A stretch of 64,000 nt of DNA, from NCBI GenBank assembly GCA_021613535.1, contig CP075493.1:1550001-1614000 (forward strand). Direction: 5' to 3'. This document shows positions 35,330 through 47,191 of this stretch, piece by piece; the stretch's first letter is position 1; each line of letters begins with the position of its first letter. Origin of the DNA: Adineta vaga (taxonomy: Eukaryota; Animalia; Rotifera). A model generated the notes under the pieces. That model was not told the origin of the DNA, ran no database searches, and saw only the letters and a list, made by a program, of their open reading frames with translations. Position numbers and translations under genes: made by a program.

Positions 35330-36360
35330 ATGAATCCACATAATAGTGAGTCAATTTATTTAACGTAATTTGTTAGACAACAACTCACAGCTTTCATTCT
35401 CGAAAATATATCTTTTATGTTGTATTTAAATACGGACATTCTTTCGATCTATTTAGTCTATTATCAACAGCAACTCACTATGAATAAACAACAATTTCAT
35501 GATTCTGGTATTGTCGATGAAGGTCTTTCCGATGAAACAGGTTCGGTCGAAGATGGTTCAAATGATCGTTCTAGTAAGTATGGGTCAAATTGTGATACGA
35601 ATAATAAGATATATGTATTGTAGACGATAATGATATTCCGAAAAAACCCAGTCAATCGTATCTTGAAATAATTGCTGAAGCAATTTTGAAAGCACCAAAT
35701 CGTACAATGCAATTATATGAAATTTATGAATACTTCCAACGAAAGTAAGTTCATATCGGTGTGTTTTAGCCTTGTAAATGAAGATTCACATTTTTTTCCT
35801 TTCAAATAGATATCGATATTTTGCTGAAGATGTGAATAAATCGTGGAAAAATAGCGTAAGACATAATTTATCTTTGAATGATTGTTTTGTTAAAGCAGGT
35901 CGAGGGCATAATGGCAAAGGACATTGTAAGTATAATAATATATTCACGAGACGAATGGATTCAATGATTTTTTTAATTTACAGTTTGGCGAATTCATGAA
36001 TTGGCTGAAAGAGATTTTGAACAAGGTCGTTTTCGTCGACGTCGATATCGTCAACAGATGCAACAATTACAAATGCAATCATCAAGCTATGAAACTCCAA
36101 CGATGTCATCCTTCTATCCTACAAATTCCTACTACATGTCTTCACCACCTCCATCCTATCAGGCAATTTATCCATCATCCAATAATTCATCCGAACATCA
36201 ATCAATTAGTCCAATAGAATCTCCATCAGGCATGTCAAATTTCTATATGTCATCATCAACACCATCATCTTATCCCTATTATGATCCGTATTCAACATCT
36301 TACTATCCAATGCCAATGTCATATCCACCTTCGACTGAAACAATTCATTTTGATGCTTAG
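35330..36360 (+). CDS. Forkhead transcription factor, FoxQ2-like
   Basis: [15 protein letters not shown]...[32 protein letters not shown]...[10 protein letters not shown]. The GR..NGKG and DF..G.FRRR patterns are FoxQ2-like. Confidence 0.8.
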
Positions 36361-37118
36361 TAACTGTTGAAAAGTTTAATTTTTATTTTTGTGTATATGT
36401 TTCGTTCTCTCGAATAAATTCTCTACGTTTGATACTCATTAACTCGATGAGCATGAATGATTAGTAGAAAATCATGAAAAAGGACCATTAGTTAAGGAGA
36501 AATTTAACGATCAAATAATGTGTGAAATTGTGTCGATGTCGTCGACATGGAATTAACTGACTTATCGAACAGAAAAACATTTTGTTTAGACATTGTTATG
36601 ATACTTCACACATAATTCCAAACTATTGCTCAATGAAACAAACAACAGCAGGAGACATATCTGAAACGATTCATGTTTATAACAAAGATTAATCCGATTT
36701 TGTATGGAAGAACATATGAAAATAAGTTTAAATCATTTCACTGATTCGTACGATCGCGTGAACAAGTCTGATAGAATTATACACTCAAATATTTCCACAT
36801 TAGTCAATGTTATTCTGCTAAATCTCATTAAAATCAAATTGGTTTGTAATTATCAAATCTTCATTATGTACATCTATGACCATTGCTAATTATTTAACTC
36901 GTTTCAATAAAATAAAACCGATGAAAACTAGTTGAGAAGGAGAAGGAGTATTCGATATTGTTGTTTATTTCCTTGTGATCGAATCGAATAAACAGATAAG
37001 AGAAGATGTTTTTCTCAAATAATATTTTTTAATGTTGTTGTTGTTGTTTTTTTATTCTTTATTTCGTTTCATAAAAATCATCTCTGATGACAAAGAGAAA
37101 TCTAATAAAATCATTCAA

Positions 37119-38453
37119 TTAGATTTTGTTGAATGCAACAATATCAACGGATTGAACAAAGTCTTCGAAAGCAGTGATTTTTTCTTCAAGAAAATCGGTT
37201 CCAATCTAGATCGAGAAAATGAAAACATCATGATGAACAATATGTAAATATTTGAATATGAAATTACTTTATCATCTTCAACAACACAGCCAATTTGTAA
37301 TTTTTTCACACCGAAAGCGACTGGTAGCAATTTGGCTAAAATAAATCATATCAATCGTATGAAGAATCGCTTCGCGTTCTTTTCCTATTTACCTTGTCCC
37401 CAAATAAGACCATCAGCTTCGATTGATCTTACAGATTGTTCCATAGCTTGAAGGTCAGTTTCATCATCCCAAGGTTTGATATCAAGTACGATTGTACTTT
37501 TAGCAATGATCTTTTCTTCTACAAGAATAAAACAATTATTTATCACTGTGAATGAAGTAGAAATAAATGAATTACTCGTCGATTTCTTGGTTGCATATTC
37601 AGCTAATCGTCGTTTTGTTTCTTCAGTTTGTTCTTCATCATCGGAACCAAAAAGATCAATATCATCATCATCAGCCGCAGCAGGTGCTGGTTGTTTCTAC
37701 AAAAGAAAAAGACAGAATTTTATTCGTCTGTTAAACATATATGAAGAAAAAACTCGACTTTTCTTAATCTAAAGAGGGGACGGGGATTTGTCTTTTTAAC
37801 TAAATTCACACAAATATCTGACCGAACTAATCGTTTGTTTGTTTATTTCAAGTTGTTCCACACGTTGTTTAAGGTCATCAAGCATCTGTAAGATATTCTG
37901 ATGAGTTTTTTCAATTTGTGTCAGACGTTGTTCCGCATTCGTATCCATCGTTGTCGATGGTATTGCCGTTGGAGTAGTATTATGGAGAATTTTTCGAACG
38001 TCACGAATTTGTTCGCTTAAACTTGCCTGCAAGGTTTACGAGAAAGAGAGACCATATTTTTATATAAATAAATGCATTCCATATATGCAATATACAATGA
38101 CGATCAAAGATGACAAAAGGCAAGCAATAGGATACATACAACTTTGGGATGTGTGGGAGAAAACTTCATTCATAAACGAGAAAAAAGCAGGCGTAATACA
38201 AGCTCATGCTTATCTCCAATGTAAACTAACCTGTTCGACTGGTTTAGGTGCTTGAACTGTTTCGTGTTTTACTTCTCGTGTACATGAAGCTGTAGTAGCA
38301 CCTTGTTGTTTTTGATTCTATGCAAAGCAAAAGATTAGAAAAGAAATGAATCAAAAATGAGAAATTTACAAAAACTGTATAATGCGTTTGTTCAGCAAGA
38401 TCAACTTCATATTTTGGAAACCAAGTATTAACGTAGATTAAATGTTCGAGCAT
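37119..38453 (-). CDS. EEF1D: Elongation factor 1-delta
   Basis: N-terminal [11 protein letters not shown] motif, leucine zipper, [56 protein letters not shown]. Confidence 0.9.
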
Positions 38454-38593
38454 TTTTTGTAATCTTTTTTCGAAGACAAAGAATAGATCTAGAATATCAT
38501 TCAATCAATTATATACATTTTGTTTAAAACCTATGTGAAAAAAAATAGATCTGATGAAAGGAAAGAAAAAAGATCGTATTGATTTGGTTTTAT

Positions 38594-38989
38594 TTAAAGT
38601 TGAGCTAATTGTCCTTCAAGTTCTCTGACACGTTCACGACTTCGTTGTAATTCTGGATTATTTTTTAATTCATTCAATTTATTTCGTATACTTTCTGTTC
38701 TCATTGATGCTAAATTATAATCTAACCAAGATGCATAACATGAATCTTCATGGGGTAAACCGGATGAAATGCGTTCTAAACTGGCCACACTTTCATATAA
38801 TAAACTTTGTACACTTTGTGCATTTTCGGAAAAACTTCGAACTAATGAATCTGTTTGTTCTTTGATTGTTTGTTCCGAACTTAATTGTTGAACAATATTA
38901 CCAGCATTCCATAACATTTTTGTTAATTTATCTTCAGCTGTACGTAATTTATCAAGAGTATGAGATGTGGCATTGGTAAAGTCCGTCAT
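38594..38989 (-). CDS. MED11: Mediator subunit 11 (intronless)
   Basis: LWNAG...LS and SGLPHEDSCY match the MED11 pattern (LQNAG...TGQPHEGSSY). Length ~131 aa. Confidence 0.8.
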   Translation of the reverse strand: MTDFTNATSHTLDKLRTAEDKLTKMLWNAGNIVQQLSSEQTIKEQTDSLVRSFSENAQSVQSLLYESVASLERISSGLPHEDSCYASWLDYNLASMRTESIRNKLNELKNNPELQRSRERVRELEGQLAQL

Positions 38990-39286
38990 GGTTAAGAAAA
39001 AATAAATAATAATAATGTCGACGGGCAAATCTAGCGATGCTATATATAGCAAATCAGAAACAATGATTGGATGAAAAAACTTCTTATTCCATAAAATTTT
39101 TATAAATAATAATAAAAATAAAAAAACAATATTTCTTATTTTATTTTCTTACGAAATTAAATAACATACGCAATCATATATCATTGGTTCTTTCTTACAC
39201 CAATCCAAACGTTCGAAATATTTCAGTCATTTCATTATTCTACAAATCAAACAGCTATACATAATCATTCAGAATTGTGAAAGACA

Positions 39287-39619
39287 ATGGCTAAACATCA
39301 TCCTGATTTAATCTTCTGTCGCAAACAATCTGGTGTTGCAATTGGTCGTCTTTGTGAAAAATGTGATGGACGTTGTGTTATATGTGATTCTTATGTTCGT
39401 CCAACTACACTCGTACGAATATGCGATGAATGCAATTATGGTTCATATCAGGGTCGATGTGTGATTTGTGGTGGTCCTGGTGTATCGGATGCGTATTATT
39501 GTCGAGAATGTACCATTACTGAGAAAGATCGTGATGGTTGCCCAAAGATTGTTAATTTAGGAAGTGCTAAAACAGATTTGTTTTATGAAAGAAAGAAATT
39601 TGGATTTAAAAAACGTTAA
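39287..39619 (+). CDS. PHF5A: PHD finger-like domain protein 5A (SF3b subunit), intronless
   Basis: Near-invariant 110-aa sequence [14 protein letters not shown]...[27 protein letters not shown]. Confidence 0.99.
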
Positions 39620-39689
39620 TGATATTGTGAAATCAATAAATAGATATGTAATATTCAACTCTTTTTTTTTCTTGTTGTCTTTATTCTAG

Positions 39690-40935
39690 ATGAATATAGA
39701 AGAGAAGAAGAAACGTAAAGTTACTTTTAAAGAAGTTGATGAAGGAAATAAAAAACAAAAACAAAATCAAACAACGCAAGATACACGTTTACATAGTGGA
39801 AAATATACATTAGATAGTGATGAAGATGATGATGATGACGATCAAGGAAACGAAAAAGAAATGAATCAAGATAATCTTGAAGGTAAGTTTTGTTGAATTA
39901 TTTATGAATCAAACTTTTCTTTTTCTCAAATAGAAATTGGACAAGAACGTGCAACTATTGGATTTGATGATGATGTGAAAATTACACCATTTAATATTGA
40001 TGAAGAATTAGAAGATGGTCATTATGATGAAACAGGATGTTTTCAATGGAAAAAGAAAGATGATGTTCACGATGCATGGCTTGATGAAATCGATTGGACC
40101 AATGTGAAAAATTATAAATTAAAAAATCCTCAAGCAACGGATGAAGATCCGAATAATTCAACGACCGATATTCGCCCTGAAGAAGATGAAGAAGAGACTG
40201 ATGAAATAGAATTTAATGAAGCGAATACAATCAGATCGATGTTAGTTCTGATGCAACCCGGTGAATCTGTTGTTCGTACAATCAAACGACTAGGTGCTGC
40301 GATAGCAAAGTAAGATAAGAAATCTTTGGAAAAAAAACAAGTCTTTATATAATTTATTTTCACAGTAATAAACCGAAACAACAAGGAAAACAACGTAAAT
40401 TACTTCCAGGTGAAGTTCCTAAACCAGCAGCTATTGAACAAACACCTGAAGAATTGAAAAAAAATAAACTTCTTCTTGAAGAAATGTCTGGTTTAGCTAA
40501 TCAATTCGTATCCAATGGTGAAGCTGATATCTATCAAGAAACTTATGAACGTCTTAAATCAAAATTGGATCGTCTTCAATCATCAACAACATCAAAAGTA
40601 ACAACGTCCACATTTGATATGTTTGGAGATAGTGATATATCTACATCGATAAATAAACCAACGACAGAAACAAAACGTAAGACAATAAAATCTAAGAAAT
40701 ATTTCATTTCGATTATTGATTCTTTTCTCTTTCAGCATCATCAGAAGTACTTTGGGAATATACAACTAATGAAAATATACCAGGAGATCTTCAAGGTCCA
40801 TTTACAACGGAACAAATGGTTCGTTTAACAGAAATGGAAGGCAAATTAGATAAAGAAAAAGTTCGATGTCGTCGGATTGGTACCGAACAATTCTATTCCA
40901 TAAAACGTATTGATTTTGATCTGTATCTCGATTAA
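39690..40935 (+). CDS. CD2BP2: U5 snRNP 52K protein / CD2BP2
   Basis: GKYTLDSDED, ITPFNIDEELEDGHYD, DAWLDEIDW, MQPGESV, IYQETYE, FDMFG, and a C-terminal GYF-type domain WEY...GPFTTEQM...FYSIKRIDFDLY. Confidence 0.92.
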
Positions 40936-41267
40936 AAGTATTATGTGTAAATAACTTCTACTTCTTTCTCTTTCTTGTTGATTCAATAAAAAAAAACGTC
41001 TAAACAGTGGTTTACTAAATTTGTCTTTTCTGCTATGAAATATACACGAACGTTTATTCATCAAGATGGTTGCATTATTTCCTTTGATGATTTGGAGAAA
41101 ATAGGATAATAGATAGTTTTTTGAAATGTTTATTTATAAATATGTAGATATATTGCAAAAAAAGGACTGGAAATAACTACAGAATCATATGTACGATTAA
41201 AAAATCATGATGACAAGAGAAAAAAAAAGGAACATATGATTTTAAATATTAAAAAATCTCATTCTCT

Positions 41268-44200
41268 TCAAGCTTGTTTTGGTTTGTTTAAAAGTGTTAA
41301 TGAGTCGAGTTTTGGTCGTGATTCATGGACTTTTTCAACAAATGAATAACCGAGAAGACTTGGTTGAAATTGAATTGAAACAAGTCGAAATAATGTTGTT
41401 GTTGGTTGAAGATAATCATAGACACGAATGGAAATTGGTGACCAGTTGACAACTGTTGATAATCGTTCAAGACACCATTCCATACAGATATCTTTACCAT
41501 AAATTGTTGATGGAACATTGATGAAAAGACTGAGTTTGTTTAAGCATCGATCATATCGGAAATATTGAACATTTTCAACACGGCTTAAGAAGAATCCAAT
41601 TTGACGTTCATTGACACGCATTCCTGAAATCAAATGATACAAGATTGAATCGTTTTGAAAAACTAAAATAAAGGATCGTTGTATTTACCTGATGGAAGTT
41701 CGATATCAATAACAATTGTACGATTGAATGTATCTTTAGCTAAACGTTGAGCTTCAGTTGTTGGTGTATAGGTCAAACAAGTTTTAGCAAGGATTTCATT
41801 GAGCCAATTCTTTGGTTGAAATTCTTGTGTTAATTTAAATGGCATTGGTTCAATTGGTTTTTGTTGTTCTTTATCAGCAAAGATTTTGACAATAGAAACA
41901 CCAGCAATACCGAAACCATGAACTGAATAGGTAATTTCACGGACTGGTAATGTAATGTGAAAGATTTGAATAGCATCGAAGTTCTTTGAATCAATTTTGA
42001 ATTGTTGTTTTTCTCCGTTGTCAGCAGCCATATCGATTGTTACGGCAACTTTATCCATTTCGAATTGTTTACGGAAAAGACAACTGAGTCTGGTTGAAAC
42101 TTCACTGAAGAAAATAGCATCTAAGATTGTGTCATATTGTGGGTGAATTGTTAATTGTTTAACAGCCCAACGTGCCATATCAAATGCTGTACGATAATCA
42201 TTATAATAAGCATAGAGTGAGATGGTCATTGAGTTAATCAATAATTCATCGCTAATTGTCATTTTGTCATCAACATTCTTCCAATATTTTGAATTGTCTT
42301 CTGGTACAACAGTTAATTTACGTGTGATGAGTGTATCATGGATCTTTTGACGTAAATCTGTTGAAATATGACGATCTTGAATGAATGCTAATTCAATTAA
42401 AGTAATTGGAATAATATGTGATTTAACATCTGGAACACGTGATACTAAATAACGATGAGCACGCATAACTGGACTATTTTCTCCTTCGAATAATCGACGA
42501 CGGATAAATTCAGGCATACAATCGGATGAATTGTCACGTGTGAGTGAATAGAGAACAATAGCAGTTAAGGATTCTCGACGAAATTCACCAGCACAGAATT
42601 GATAATGAAAACATGCACCATTATCTTCGAATGAACCATCTTCATGTTGATGAGATAAAATCCAGTTTAATGTACGGTTAAGTGTAACATTATCACGGAA
42701 TGGCATCATTGGTGAAATCATGGCACCAAAAGCTAATGATGTTAAGTAAAGTGATGGATGACGTGATCGATCATCGGCAATGAATGAAAATGAACCATTG
42801 TAATCATTATAAAATTGAAGTTCTTGATAAGCTGCTGTGATATTTTCAGCAGTCATATTGAAATAGACTGATTCAGTTTGGAGAGTTTCGTTGTAATAAC
42901 GACGAAGAGCAAGTGAACGATAGAGACGAACAAGTGCGCGATCAATACCAACTAATGCAGCAGTGCTCATGGTGTATTTTTTGAAGAATCGTTCAAGAAA
43001 AGATCCTAAATTAAAAATTAATTATTCGAAAAAGTTCAAGCAAAGAAAATAAATCTACCTGATGCTGAGACTCGAACTGCACGAAGGTTTGTTGGTTCGA
43101 CGATTTTTTCAACAATTGGACCATAGGTTTTCTTTTCACCTGTTAAATCGAATAAACGAGCTGTGATTTCTTTACGTTCAATAAGTGGTTCACGAACGAA
43201 AAGAGTTAAGATTTCATAATCACCACCGAATTCGGATTCAACTTCAAGAACAATTTGAAGAAGACCACAACGTTTTGGAATAAGAACAAGGCTTCGTGTT
43301 TCAACACCGAATGTTTTGAGTGATGGAATTGTAAGTGTATAATCTTTATCTTTGCTTGATACAACAACATCTGGTTTCGATTGTTCAATAAGTTCGAAAT
43401 CAGGTGATGCACGAATACGGAAGATAACATTAGTTAAATCTTTTTCCAAATAATTGTTAATACCATAGGTAAAGAGCATATGTTCACCGACTCGACCATA
43501 TTTTTCACAGTCAGCAAGAACGAAAAGACCTTGATTTGTTGGTAAACGAATTGGTTGAGCAATTGATAAACCTGATTTGCTGTTAAGAGCAAATCCAGTT
43601 GCGAGCCATGTTGAGTATGGTTTTGTTCGTGGAAGAACAACTTTGCCAGTTCCTTGTGATTCAATACGGCTTGTGTTGAAGAAGATTGAACGGTAATATC
43701 CAATACGAGATTGTTCTTCAAGCATAACTGGTGGAATCATCATTGATAAACCATATTGACTAATATATTGTTCAAGTAAATCACGAGCTTCATCACGAAT
43801 ATTAAATGATGAACGTTCCAAGACTGTTAATGATTCTTGACGAAATTTGGAGAATAATTTTGTTAAATTTTCACGTTTCATTTCAACTGGAACACGTAAT
43901 GAATCGAAATCAGAGACAATGGATAAACCGGATTGCATGAATTTGAATGCTTCTTGTGAGAATGAATTTAATCGTGAACTCATACGTTCATACCATTTTC
44001 GTGTACCGTATTCTGTTGATTGACTAGACAAGGTTTCTTTTTCAACATTCATATCTTGTTCAGGTTTTCGTGGAATTGGTTTTGTTTTTGGTTCAGTAGC
44101 GAAGACAAGTGGCATACTTGTAGCTATTACGAAATCATCGTTATGAACTGAAACATCAAATTGATTGATAGTTCTATCAAGTTGACGATCGAATTCTGAT

Positions 44201-47191
44201 GAGGTTGATTCTTCATTTGGCATATCACCGTAGATACGACCCATTTTTGATGAAACATAGATATCATCACCTTCTACTGGAAGTAATGTATGATCTGTAT
44301 GAACACCAAAGATCATCTTTTCAACTGGATAACGAGCTTCATAGCCCTAAAAAATGAAAATGAAATTTAATTAGAATGGAAAGATGAAACCATTTAATTC
44401 TATACCACACGTTCGAGACGAGCTTGTTCATCTTCATCAGCTTCGCTTATTGTTCGACGAGCGAAAGCTGAGTTTTGTGGAGCACCACCCATTGGTCCTT
44501 GACCACCGTTCATTGGTCCTTGAGCACCACCCATTGGTCCTTGAGCACCACCCATTGGTCCTTGAGCACCACCCATTGGTCCTTGAGCACCACCCATTGG
44601 TCCTTGACCACCGTTCATTGGTCCTTGACCACCGTTCATTGGTCCTTGAGCACCACCCATTGGTCCTTGAAAAGCTGAGTTTTGTCCAGACATATCTCCA
44701 TTTGGTGGCATTTGACGTTGAGCACGAACAACTGATTCACCTGATGGCATTGTTGGCATACTGACGAGAGGTACATGTTCGTATGAAGTTAAATATCGAA
44801 GTAATCGTTCCTTGGTAACTTCGTTTGATAAACCTTGTAAGATACCATCGAATTCAAATACATTAAGACCAACAGTTGATTCTGGAACACCAGTGAATGA
44901 AAGTTCAACACGTGTTTTATCTTGTACTTTATCGGAAATAACAATTGGTTTTGTGTTCATTTCTGGTACAAATTTGAAGTTGTCAACAACTGTTTCAGTT
45001 GATGTAAATGGAACAATTGTAGCATTTAATGTTAATGAACTTTGAAAAAGACCAGCAACTGAAAAACGATATGTTTCAGCAACATTGAAACCGAATGATG
45101 GTTGGAAGGCATAGACGAGTAAAGTCGAATATGGAACCATATCACGTGTAATATAAATTGGTAAAGTACCGTTGAAAACACATGTGAGTGGCATTTGTTC
45201 TTCTGGTCGGAGAGCACGTTTTGTTTTGATTTGACATTCTTTGGTTGGTTTAATGTGAAATTCACCGGTAAGAGTAATACGACCATTTGTCATAAGAACG
45301 TATGACATGAGTAATGGTTCGAATTTTTCAACTGGTTTTGATGGAATCAATTGAATGTAAAAGTTTGAAACACGGTCAACAGTTGAGATTTGTGAACTGA
45401 CGACTGGTACATTGACATCGGTATTGACTGGAGCGACTGTTGATGGTAAAAGTTCGATGGATAATTTAGCACCATTACGACGAGGTGTTGGCATTAATGG
45501 AATTGTAACGGTACGGTAACCATGGATTTTACCATCTTCACCTACTGGCGTAACCTAAATCATTCAAAATATAGAAACATGTTAAAAAAGAAGACGACAA
45601 GAATACATACTGTCATAAGAACACCAATACAGTTTTCAGGGAATTCCATGTTGAAGAAACCCATATCATTACGACCACTAGAACGAAAGAATAGAGAAAA
45701 ATAATCATCTGTTTGTTAAATTGAATTTGTTCATACCGTGTATAGAAATCTTTAATTTCAACAATTTTTTCTTCTTGTTCTTGATCTTTTTCACCACGGA
45801 GAATCATACGAACATTAACGATCATATTTTCCATTTGAATTGGTTTACCATCTGGGCGTTTAGCAGTAACAGTATATTCATTTTTCATACCAGCTTCAAA
45901 TTCAAGTGGACGGATTTCATAAATGATATCACGTGTAAAAACTGGAATTAAATGACGAATGACACGTTCTTGACCAGTTTGAAGATCAGTAACTTGAATG
46001 TAAATTTGAATAGCAAGAGCTTTGCTGATATCAATTTCGAATAATGATAAAAGATCATAGTTTAATTCGATACGGCCAGCAATTTCAAATTTCTGTGATT
46101 TCCATTTACGCCATTCTTCACTTTTTGTTGGTTCTTCCTTTCGTGCTTGACTTTTCATTGTCATTTCGAATTCTTGTTCAGTAACTTGACCAATGGAAAC
46201 GATAGCACGACCAAAGATAGGTGTGTTGTCGTCATCAGCAATTTCAATAACACCACGAAGAAATTTATCTGTACGAAGAAGAAATCGTTGAAAGATAGCT
46301 TTAAGATCGAATGATGGTGTAACTGGACGAGAGACAATAACTTGAATAGATGATGTTGTATTGTCAATTGTAGCTGACACAAGCCATCCACCAAGGTTAA
46401 CATCTTCACCAATTGGAAATCGGAGAGTTTCGGTAAGACCTAAATAGATTCAATAAAATTAAAATCATTCATTGTTGAAAACAAAAAGAAAACTTTACCT
46501 GAACGAATTGGAACGCGTGGAAATTCACCGACAAGCTTAAGAGCAGCATCCTATCATGAAAAAAAGATTTTTTGTATAACAAAAACAAAACAAAAATTAT
46601 AATATAACTTACATAAATTTCAATGTTGATTTCATCGCTTTCAATTGGCATAAGTTCTTCAGTTGTAGCAATGACACGGATTTCCATGGTATCATGTGGA
46701 CGATAGGTTGATGCTGATGTTTGAACGAGGAGAACATGACGACTATCGTAGACAATAACATCACGTTTTTCTTCGAATTGAAGACCACCAGTACCAGTGA
46801 TGATTAATTCACCAGCACCAATTGGAAATTCTTTTGGAAGAGTTAATGTAGCATTACGTGTTTCACCAGGTTTGCAAACAACTTTTTGTTCGAGACGTTT
46901 GGATCCGAGAATAAAATCGAATTTAACTTCTACAGGTTGTGCTGCAGAAGCAATAAAAATTGAAAGTTGGTTATCATAATCAACTTTAAAAAGTTTCGGT
47001 ACGATAACGAGATAAGAACTAGAAAAAAAACGAATGATTTTCTTCAATTAGATTTAAAGACGACAACTTACTCTTTGGCAAAAGTTACGCTTGTTAAGGC
47101 AACCAAGCCGAAAATGATCAATGACCACTAGAAAATATAAATATATATGAAATCAAAATTGAAAGAAAAATCATTTCACGCTTACATTCAT
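41268..47191 (-). CDS. Alpha-2-macroglobulin/TEP (CD109-like) family secreted protein lacking the thioester motif
   Basis: Signal peptide, YLVIVPK, VQTSASTYRP (QTDKPIYKP-like), STWLATGFAL, DGSFED, LTAIVL, IDIELPSG, VYDY. Roughly 1,800 aa over about ten exons. Confidence 0.88.
44480..44668 (-). repeat. Coding minisatellite: 9 x 21 nt (QGPMGGA/QGPMNGG)
   Basis: Units gagcaccacccattggtcctt / gaccaccgttcattggtcctt, flanked on both sides by aaagctgagttttg (QNSAF). Confidence 0.97.

Follow-up and report, generated by a model that had tools for sequence, protein, structure and literature searches.

Probable spliced-leader operons diverging from a shared CCAAT-box promoter in the bdelloid rotifer Adineta vaga

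The locus described here is a compact cluster of four genes in the bdelloid rotifer Adineta vaga, a candidate pair of operons resolved by spliced-leader (SL) trans-splicing. It lies in a stretch of 64,000 nucleotides (nt), hereafter the window (positions 1,550,001 to 1,614,000 of contig CP075493.1, assembly GCA_021613535.1; C1:1550001-1614000), which is AT-rich (~30% GC) and belongs to a genome of 100.8 Mb in six contigs. Two genes, MED11 on the minus strand and PHF5A on the plus strand, stand head-to-head in the middle of the cluster, and each is followed on its own strand by a second gene, EF1-delta after MED11 and CD2BP2 after PHF5A (Table 1). Exons were translated and searched singly for family matches, and all four identities were matched by Pfam; the GYF match of CD2BP2, which comes from its last exon, scores 22.9 bits and falls slightly below the cut-off of 25.7. 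The same names had been proposed from the letters alone in a first-pass annotation, whose coordinates for the genes, the gaps between them and the splice acceptors were all correct when re-checked against the sequence.

Table 1. Coordinates of the four genes, the two same-strand gaps and the central spacer (window positions)
Feature	Position	Strand	Description
EF1-delta (EEF1D-like) coding region	37119..38453	-	Seven exons; Pfam EF1_GNE and EF-1_beta_acid in exons; ATG at 38453
Gap B	38454..38593	-	140 nt, MED11 stop to EF1-delta ATG
MED11	38594..38989	-	Intronless, 131 amino acids; ATG at 38989, stop at 38596-38594; Pfam Med11 3.6e-06, above cut-off; first cistron of the putative leftward unit
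Bidirectional promoter spacer	38990..39286		297 bp, MED11 and PHF5A head-to-head
PHF5A (SF3b subunit)	39287..39619	+	Intronless, 110 amino acids, stop TAA; Pfam PHF5 7.6e-50; first cistron of the putative rightward unit
Gap A	39620..39689	+	70 nt, PHF5A stop to CD2BP2 ATG
CD2BP2-like (U5-52K, GYF domain)	39690..40935	+	359 amino acids, 4 exons; second cistron of the putative rightward unit, SL trans-spliced

The RNA evidence consists of Logan assembled contigs from four runs (X1, X2, X5 and X7) of three studies. The RNA status of these runs was a guess, but the contigs lack introns and some end in poly(A) or begin with a leader, which indicates that they derive from RNA. They are collinear with the genome over MED11 (X1 record 2, X2 record 7 and X5 record 10) and, from 39231 to 39651, over PHF5A (X1 record 3), so that both first genes are intronless, as the first-pass annotation had stated; each is also single-copy, with one match in its own genome. 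The three introns of CD2BP2 (39883-39933, 40310-40365 and 40677-40735) have GT..AG joints that recur in three to four runs. Those of EF1-delta appear as CT..AC joints at 37205/37268, 37335/37393, 37518/37576, 37696/38231 and 38317/38370, each in one to four runs; for the joint 37696/38231, the three remaining runs show matching loose ends. Through this junction the prevailing transcript in each of the four runs omits exon 3 of EF1-delta (~37823-38026, leucine zipper), and the form that includes it amounts to roughly 4-10% by contig depth. The gene accordingly yields two forms, a short EF1-beta-like one of 190 amino acids and a long EF1-delta-like one of ~258 amino acids.

The gap between PHF5A and CD2BP2 (gap A) holds AATAAA at 39635-39640, a run of nine T residues at 39662-39670 and the acceptor TTCTAG at 39684-39689, directly before the CD2BP2 start codon, the very succession of poly(A) signal, pyrimidine tract and abutting acceptor that had been noted before. 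In the gap between MED11 and EF1-delta (gap B), AATAAA at 38594-38589 overlaps the MED11 stop codon, and the acceptor TTCTAG lies at 38494-38489 on the minus strand. Further upstream, the motif TGTATATAA at 38517-38509 contains TATATAA (38515-38509), 27 nt 5′ of the EF1-delta exon start. After the acceptor comes a pyrimidine-rich 5′ untranslated region (5′UTR) of 35 nt (38488-38454). This leader, ATCTATTCTTTGTCTTCGAA, has close variants in Adineta ricciae and in the lineage L072, and it resembles the terminal oligopyrimidine (TOP) motif of translation-factor mRNAs, but a spliced leader would part it from the cap. The acceptor motif TTCTAGAT is no rarer than chance in the window (5 occurrences against 4.6 expected), and the case therefore rests on the RNA contigs and on conservation across genomes.

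SL trans-splicing in rotifers has been known since 2005. Two fully spliced CD2BP2 contigs from different studies (X1 record 4 and X5 record 11) both begin at position 39688. In X5 record 11, nine non-genomic letters, CTTACCAAG, precede this position; with the genomic AG that comes next (39688-39689) they form CTTACCAAGAG, which is identical to the 3′-terminal 11 nt of the rotifer SL as published, a leader of 23 nt with the sequence GGCTTATTACAACTTACCAAGAG (PMC3795323 Table 1). In this run the CD2BP2 5′ end thus carries the SL, its non-genomic tail matching the published leader, and the SL is trans-spliced onto CD2BP2 at the acceptor in gap A. The A. vaga genome itself contains 42 SL copies followed by a GT donor, all of which share one 23-mer; its first base is T, against G in the published leader. 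The SL RNA genes occur mostly as inverted pairs ~156 bp apart and in clusters on C5 and C2 (for example C1:2551158-2551338 and C5:9884354-9925971). An Rfam match of such a pair to MIR821 lay below threshold and was rejected as spurious, being due to the inverted repeat of the two SL genes.

One contig also covers the same junction in unprocessed form. X2 record 8 (1,526 nt) is unbroken from 39248 to 39880, through PHF5A and the whole of gap A, and then continues as far as 40939 with all three introns of CD2BP2 spliced out; it indicates that RNA spanning the unprocessed PHF5A-CD2BP2 junction exists. The PHF5A contig X1 record 3 ends 11 nt past AATAAA, and the contig depths of PHF5A and CD2BP2 are equal (46.6 and 49 in X1). 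A separate X5 contig (depth 19.6, with 23 letters on its short side) links 37286, which falls within an exon of EF1-delta, to 39660, where the T-run of gap A begins, by a non-canonical CA..AC joint, and is probably an assembly or template-switch chimera.

For MED11 and EF1-delta, the linkage in RNA consists only of MED11 RNA that reaches the downstream acceptor. The MED11 contig X5 record 10 runs from 39016 to 38488 and ends in 20 non-templated A residues. Because base 38488 is itself an A on the minus strand, the 3′ end of the MED11 mRNA either coincides with the acceptor AG of EF1-delta or lies one base beyond it. On the other side of the junction, the EF1-delta contig X7 record 14 aligns from 38490, that is, including this AG, after 4 letters unmatched to the genome. 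The first-pass annotation had called for a leader at both acceptors: at CD2BP2 it was found, and at EF1-delta the presence of four non-genomic letters before the AG would fit an SL tail that shares its final AG with the genome, so that the SL may be joined to EF1-delta as well. An exact 22-mer of SL tail and EF1-delta 5′UTR gave 0 matches in metagenome contigs. When a shorter probe was used, a 19-mer in which one base was degenerate, there were 44, all rejected as chance matches, since none encodes EF1-delta or extends the SL. In the four runs there is neither a cis-splice joint from an upstream exon to either acceptor (39690 or 38488) nor, among the assembled contigs, one that starts with genomic sequence inside gap A or gap B; either would have spoken against the polycistronic units proposed at the outset.

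The spacer between MED11 and PHF5A has the properties of a bidirectional promoter: the genes lie head-to-head at less than 1 kb, the spacer has conserved shared elements, and contig 5′ ends point in both directions. CCAAT boxes are typical of such promoters. An ATTGG lies on the MED11 side (39066-39070), and an ATTGG-N12-CCAAT pair (39183-39187 and 39200-39204) on the PHF5A side. In addition, the block 39044-39055 contains ATATAGCAAATC, which on the MED11 strand is TATA-like and lies ~30 nt before the contig end at 39016, and an initiator (Inr)-like TCAGTC at 39223-39228 stands just before the PHF5A contig starts; the block and a TCA-containing element are kept in most lineages. The MED11 contigs begin at 39003, 39016 or 39090 and those of PHF5A at 39231 or 39248; as ends of assembled contigs, these may differ from the true start sites. 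In an alignment of seven lineages, the spacer measures 282-340 bp and its architecture is fixed even in GC-rich genomes; the single ATTGG and the ATTGG-N12-CCAAT pair are conserved in all seven, and the pair recurs in Rotaria and in a duplicate of the locus on chromosome 4. No CCAAT box occurs in gap A or gap B of the window, the conserved promoter motifs being confined to 38990-39286. The central promoter may be the only source of the CD2BP2 and EF1-delta mRNAs.

The layout of the cluster is kept, wholly or partly, in up to nine bdelloid lineages, an outcome that bears out the synteny expected of it. The entire four-gene cluster is present in A. ricciae (L016, L017), the species with the closest named MED11 orthologue (89% identity to that of the window), and in an environmental bdelloid (L022, L023; MED11 82%). 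A 1.5-kb environmental Adineta-like contig (L024; MED11 90%) likewise has all four genes, the outer two cut by the contig ends. Divergent PHF5A and MED11, with EF1-delta after MED11, are found in the GC-rich L072 (MED11 86%), in L026 (62%) and in L071 (64%), where the start of CD2BP2 also follows PHF5A. MED11 followed by EF1-delta is the only part seen in Rotaria socialis (L018, L019; MED11 83%) and in the environmental lineage L025 (81%). The linkage is absent from both MED11 copies of Didymodactylos carnosus and from the second MED11 copy of Rotaria sordida (L073). The MED11-bearing Logan contigs L025, L026, L071 and L072 retain introns and look genomic; they were used for synteny only, and a reading of them as spliced dicistronic transcripts was rejected for this reason. 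The PHF5A protein is too conserved to single out Rotaria, its search matches falling mostly in other eukaryotes; one match (P0044) led to the scaffold L022.

The gaps are conserved along with the gene order. Gap A measures 48-84 nt in five lineages, with AATAAA and YAG directly followed by ATG in all of them, and gap B 87-149 nt in nine lineages, all with a pyrimidine tract and YAG followed by AT, after which comes a leader of 35-45 nt that is again rich in pyrimidines. A motif like TGTATATAA 5′ of the gap B acceptor is present in the AT-rich lineages and missing in L026, L071 and L072, and its spacing is off by 10 nt in A. ricciae. Its reading as a TATA box was down-weighted for lack of conservation in the divergent lineages: judged from sequence, the motif has a weak claim to be an internal TATA box and could equally be part of the MED11 3′-end signal or of the branch region. 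Two annotations of related genomes may bear traces of similarly tight packing. In A. ricciae (GCA_905250025.1, L016 3012-4703), PHF5A and CD2BP2 are merged into one model of 397 amino acids, which the sister assembly L017 gives as separate genes; the fused model is likely a side effect of operon-type RNA coverage and would be a hint of continuous RNA in that species. In D. carnosus, the annotation 3′ of MED11 (L020 4655-9012, L075 4466-5049) places Ribosomal_S10 and Sec10 in one product of 949 amino acids, possibly a further case in which two closely spaced genes were merged.

Diverged copies of EF1-delta and CD2BP2 lie on chromosome 4 (C4:13280268-13281941; L015 6268-7941), in an inverted, ohnologous block that is collinear with 35369-47047 of the window and includes the left neighbour and, on the right, an A2M/TEP-like gene. 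The sole parts that lack a counterpart there are MED11, PHF5A and their gaps, and the ATGs of the EF1-delta-like and CD2BP2-like genes face apart across 320 bp. This spacer has the ATTGG-N12-CCAAT pair at positions 198/215, against 194/211 in the window, together with the same 12-mer, ATATAGCAAATC. The estimated chance of the pair alone in an AT-rich 320-mer is ~2e-4. A local alignment of the window spacer with the chromosome-4 spacer does not rise above shuffled sequences (64/200 reach its score), whereas the scores for A. ricciae, L071 and L072 are better (0-1/200). We regard the two spacers as homologous because of the CCAAT pair, the collinear 12-mer and these better scores.

The putative promoter thus adjoins the two second genes in one copy of the locus and is parted from them by one gene in the other, whichever arrangement is ancestral, and this is the outcome expected if it serves them in both. 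A bolder idea, that the two blocks record the gain or loss of a first cistron between a promoter that stays fixed and an SL acceptor, and that in rotifers the choice between trans-splicing and polyadenylation at one site sets the mRNA amounts (here ~50:1 for EF1-delta), is put forward tentatively, as we think it less probable than its contrary. If true, small intronless genes could enter or leave outrons freely. The copies on chromosome 4 are truncated: the CD2BP2-like gene ends early and has no detectable GYF exon, and the EF1-delta-like gene is devoid of the acidic and zipper regions. The A2M/TEP-like (thioester protein) gene of the window, a large gene at 41246-47047 on the minus strand, converges on CD2BP2 and is ~55-65% identical to its copy in the chromosome-4 block.

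We favour, with a probability of roughly 0.65, the reading that the cluster consists of two SL-resolved dicistronic operons transcribed in opposite directions from one bidirectional CCAAT-box promoter. The two halves differ in strength: PHF5A and CD2BP2 likely form an operon, and for MED11 and EF1-delta the balance tips towards one. The first-pass annotation had proposed two polycistronic units from one divergent promoter, and this proposal is now supported by the SL on CD2BP2, the contig through PHF5A and CD2BP2, the MED11 poly(A) at the EF1-delta acceptor, the conservation of the layout and the promoter motifs. It had also pointed out that PHF5A and CD2BP2 are both spliceosomal; their linkage is indeed conserved, but the functional pairing could be a coincidence.

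On this reading, rightward transcription would start near the Inr-like TCAGTC, at ~39225, and proceed through intronless PHF5A into CD2BP2. The PHF5A mRNA would be cleaved and polyadenylated near 39651, ~11 nt past AATAAA, and the 23-nt SL would be joined at 39689/39690, adjoining the CD2BP2 start codon, and would supply a cap to the downstream RNA, which would otherwise have none. The U-rich stretch of 38 nt between the PHF5A 3′ end and the CD2BP2 acceptor would then be a short intercistronic region. Leftward transcription would start near 39016 and pass through intronless MED11, both start sites being predictions in their exact position. The MED11 mRNA could end at the EF1-delta acceptor (38489/38488), the same point at which the SL would be joined. 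In operons without intercistronic DNA in Ciona intestinalis, the upstream mRNA likewise reads '...AG + poly(A)' at the downstream acceptor, and such a precursor gives, according to the authors of that study, either mRNA and not both (PMC1488885). By the same argument, one precursor at the MED11/EF1-delta junction would yield the upstream or the downstream mRNA, not both.

Several observations weigh against these operons. The contig that spans PHF5A and CD2BP2 is assembled, comes from one run and is no proof of a single molecule; the SL letters on CD2BP2 were seen in one run only and number 9 nt; and PHF5A depth is zero in X5 and X7, although such holes prove nothing. On the leftward side, the MED11 contig with poly(A) at the acceptor is again from one run, the SL on EF1-delta is putative, and the TATATAA of gap B could be a TATA box. 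Moreover, EF1-delta contigs are 20-100 times deeper than those of MED11 in all four runs (~140-2,700 against ~3-65), as far as contig depth, a poor measure of expression, can tell. The difference implies either a processing choice that strongly favours trans-splicing or an additional internal EF1-delta promoter, and the internal promoter would explain the excess more simply. It is the core of an alternative that we consider unlikely on balance, in which PHF5A and CD2BP2 form a true unit and most EF1-delta mRNA comes from an internal promoter, either within gap B, as at TATATAA, or towards the 3′ end of MED11. A short outron would then be removed by SL trans-splicing, or transcription would start in the pyrimidine-rich, TOP-like leader, and read-through from MED11 would be minor. 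The equal depth of PHF5A and CD2BP2, set beside the unequal pair on the left, fits this alternative, as do the spacing of TATATAA from the exon start and the pyrimidine-rich leader after the acceptor; internal promoters have, besides, been described inside C. elegans operons. However, the TATA-like motif is missing or displaced in the lineages named above, whereas acceptor and pyrimidine tract occur in every lineage, and the EF1-delta contig begins with non-genomic letters at the AG and not with genomic upstream sequence. The EF1-delta-like gene on chromosome 4 adjoins the shared promoter directly, and a processing choice in operons without intercistronic DNA can also give unequal levels (PMC1488885).

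A less probable account denies both operons and takes the cluster as four independent genes of a compact genome, with the downstream promoters in or after the upstream genes, the SL only trimming 5′ ends, and the gap-spanning contig a product of read-through or of assembly. The SL does serve monocistronic genes in other phyla (PMC1488885), and this account can draw on the same single-run, assembled contig. But a promoter cannot be fitted into a gap of 48-84 nt that also has to hold the poly(A) signal of the upstream gene, and this spacing is kept over deep bdelloid divergence, the MED11 mRNA end falls exactly at the downstream acceptor, and conserved promoter motifs are found in the central spacer only. 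In the duplicate, moreover, where both upstream genes are missing, the downstream genes sit at the promoter and are not orphaned. Still less credible, to the point of being very improbable, is a nested arrangement, with PHF5A and MED11 inside long first introns of CD2BP2 and EF1-delta whose first exons lie centrally and are cis-spliced to TTCTAG. In its favour, both acceptors are good 3′ splice sites without a nearby donor, but the four runs contain no such joint, and the letters joined at 39688 are those of an SL encoded elsewhere in the genome, which contradicts the arrangement for CD2BP2. We therefore retain the two SL-resolved operons as the preferred explanation of the locus.

Operons and polycistronic mRNAs were unreported in rotifers according to Wenzel et al. 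2021 (PMC7986045), and where a paper of 2025 names them, it does so only in passing, when listing lineages that have trans-splicing and operonic transcription (PMC12460157). No later report of rotifer operons was found in the literature searched, and the locus is probably an SL-resolved operon in a phylum for which no published case was found. What the locus contributes are the divergent units on a conserved CCAAT promoter, the presence of both junction types, with and without a spacer, side by side, and the control offered by the duplicate block. If the reading is true, Rotifera joins the operon-bearing phyla, and the locus provides a compact test case, with the duplicated block that is devoid of first cistrons as a natural control. 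There is a practical side as well, in that gene predictors merge such pairs, as in the PHF5A/CD2BP2 model of A. ricciae.

Among known systems, the SL2-type operons of C. elegans share with the present locus the polycistronic precursor, here putative, the trans-spliced downstream cistron and short same-strand gaps of ~100 nt. Unlike them, the tail on CD2BP2 belongs to the general rotifer SL; no second leader was seen, variant leaders not having been searched for exhaustively. The PHF5A-CD2BP2 junction is closer to the operons of Oikopleura dioica, which have intercistronic stretches of 23-30 nt (PMC1488885): in both, a poly(A) signal is followed by a short U-rich spacer (here ~38 nt) and an acceptor, and there is one SL type. 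The lineage and the SL sequence differ, and the spacer varies among bdelloids, to the extent that the entire gap in L022 is 48 nt, with almost no spacer. The MED11-EF1-delta junction in turn resembles the operons of Ciona and the SL1-type operons of C. elegans, in that the acceptor AG of EF1-delta is also where the MED11 mRNA stops and its poly(A) begins, with no intercistronic DNA. As in those systems, a single SL would serve monocistronic and operon genes alike, the genes joined are unrelated housekeeping genes, and the two mRNAs of a precursor may be mutually exclusive. The locus differs from them in belonging to Rotifera, in an AATAAA that overlaps the MED11 stop codon and may give proximal 3′ ends, and in the placing of two units on one bidirectional promoter.

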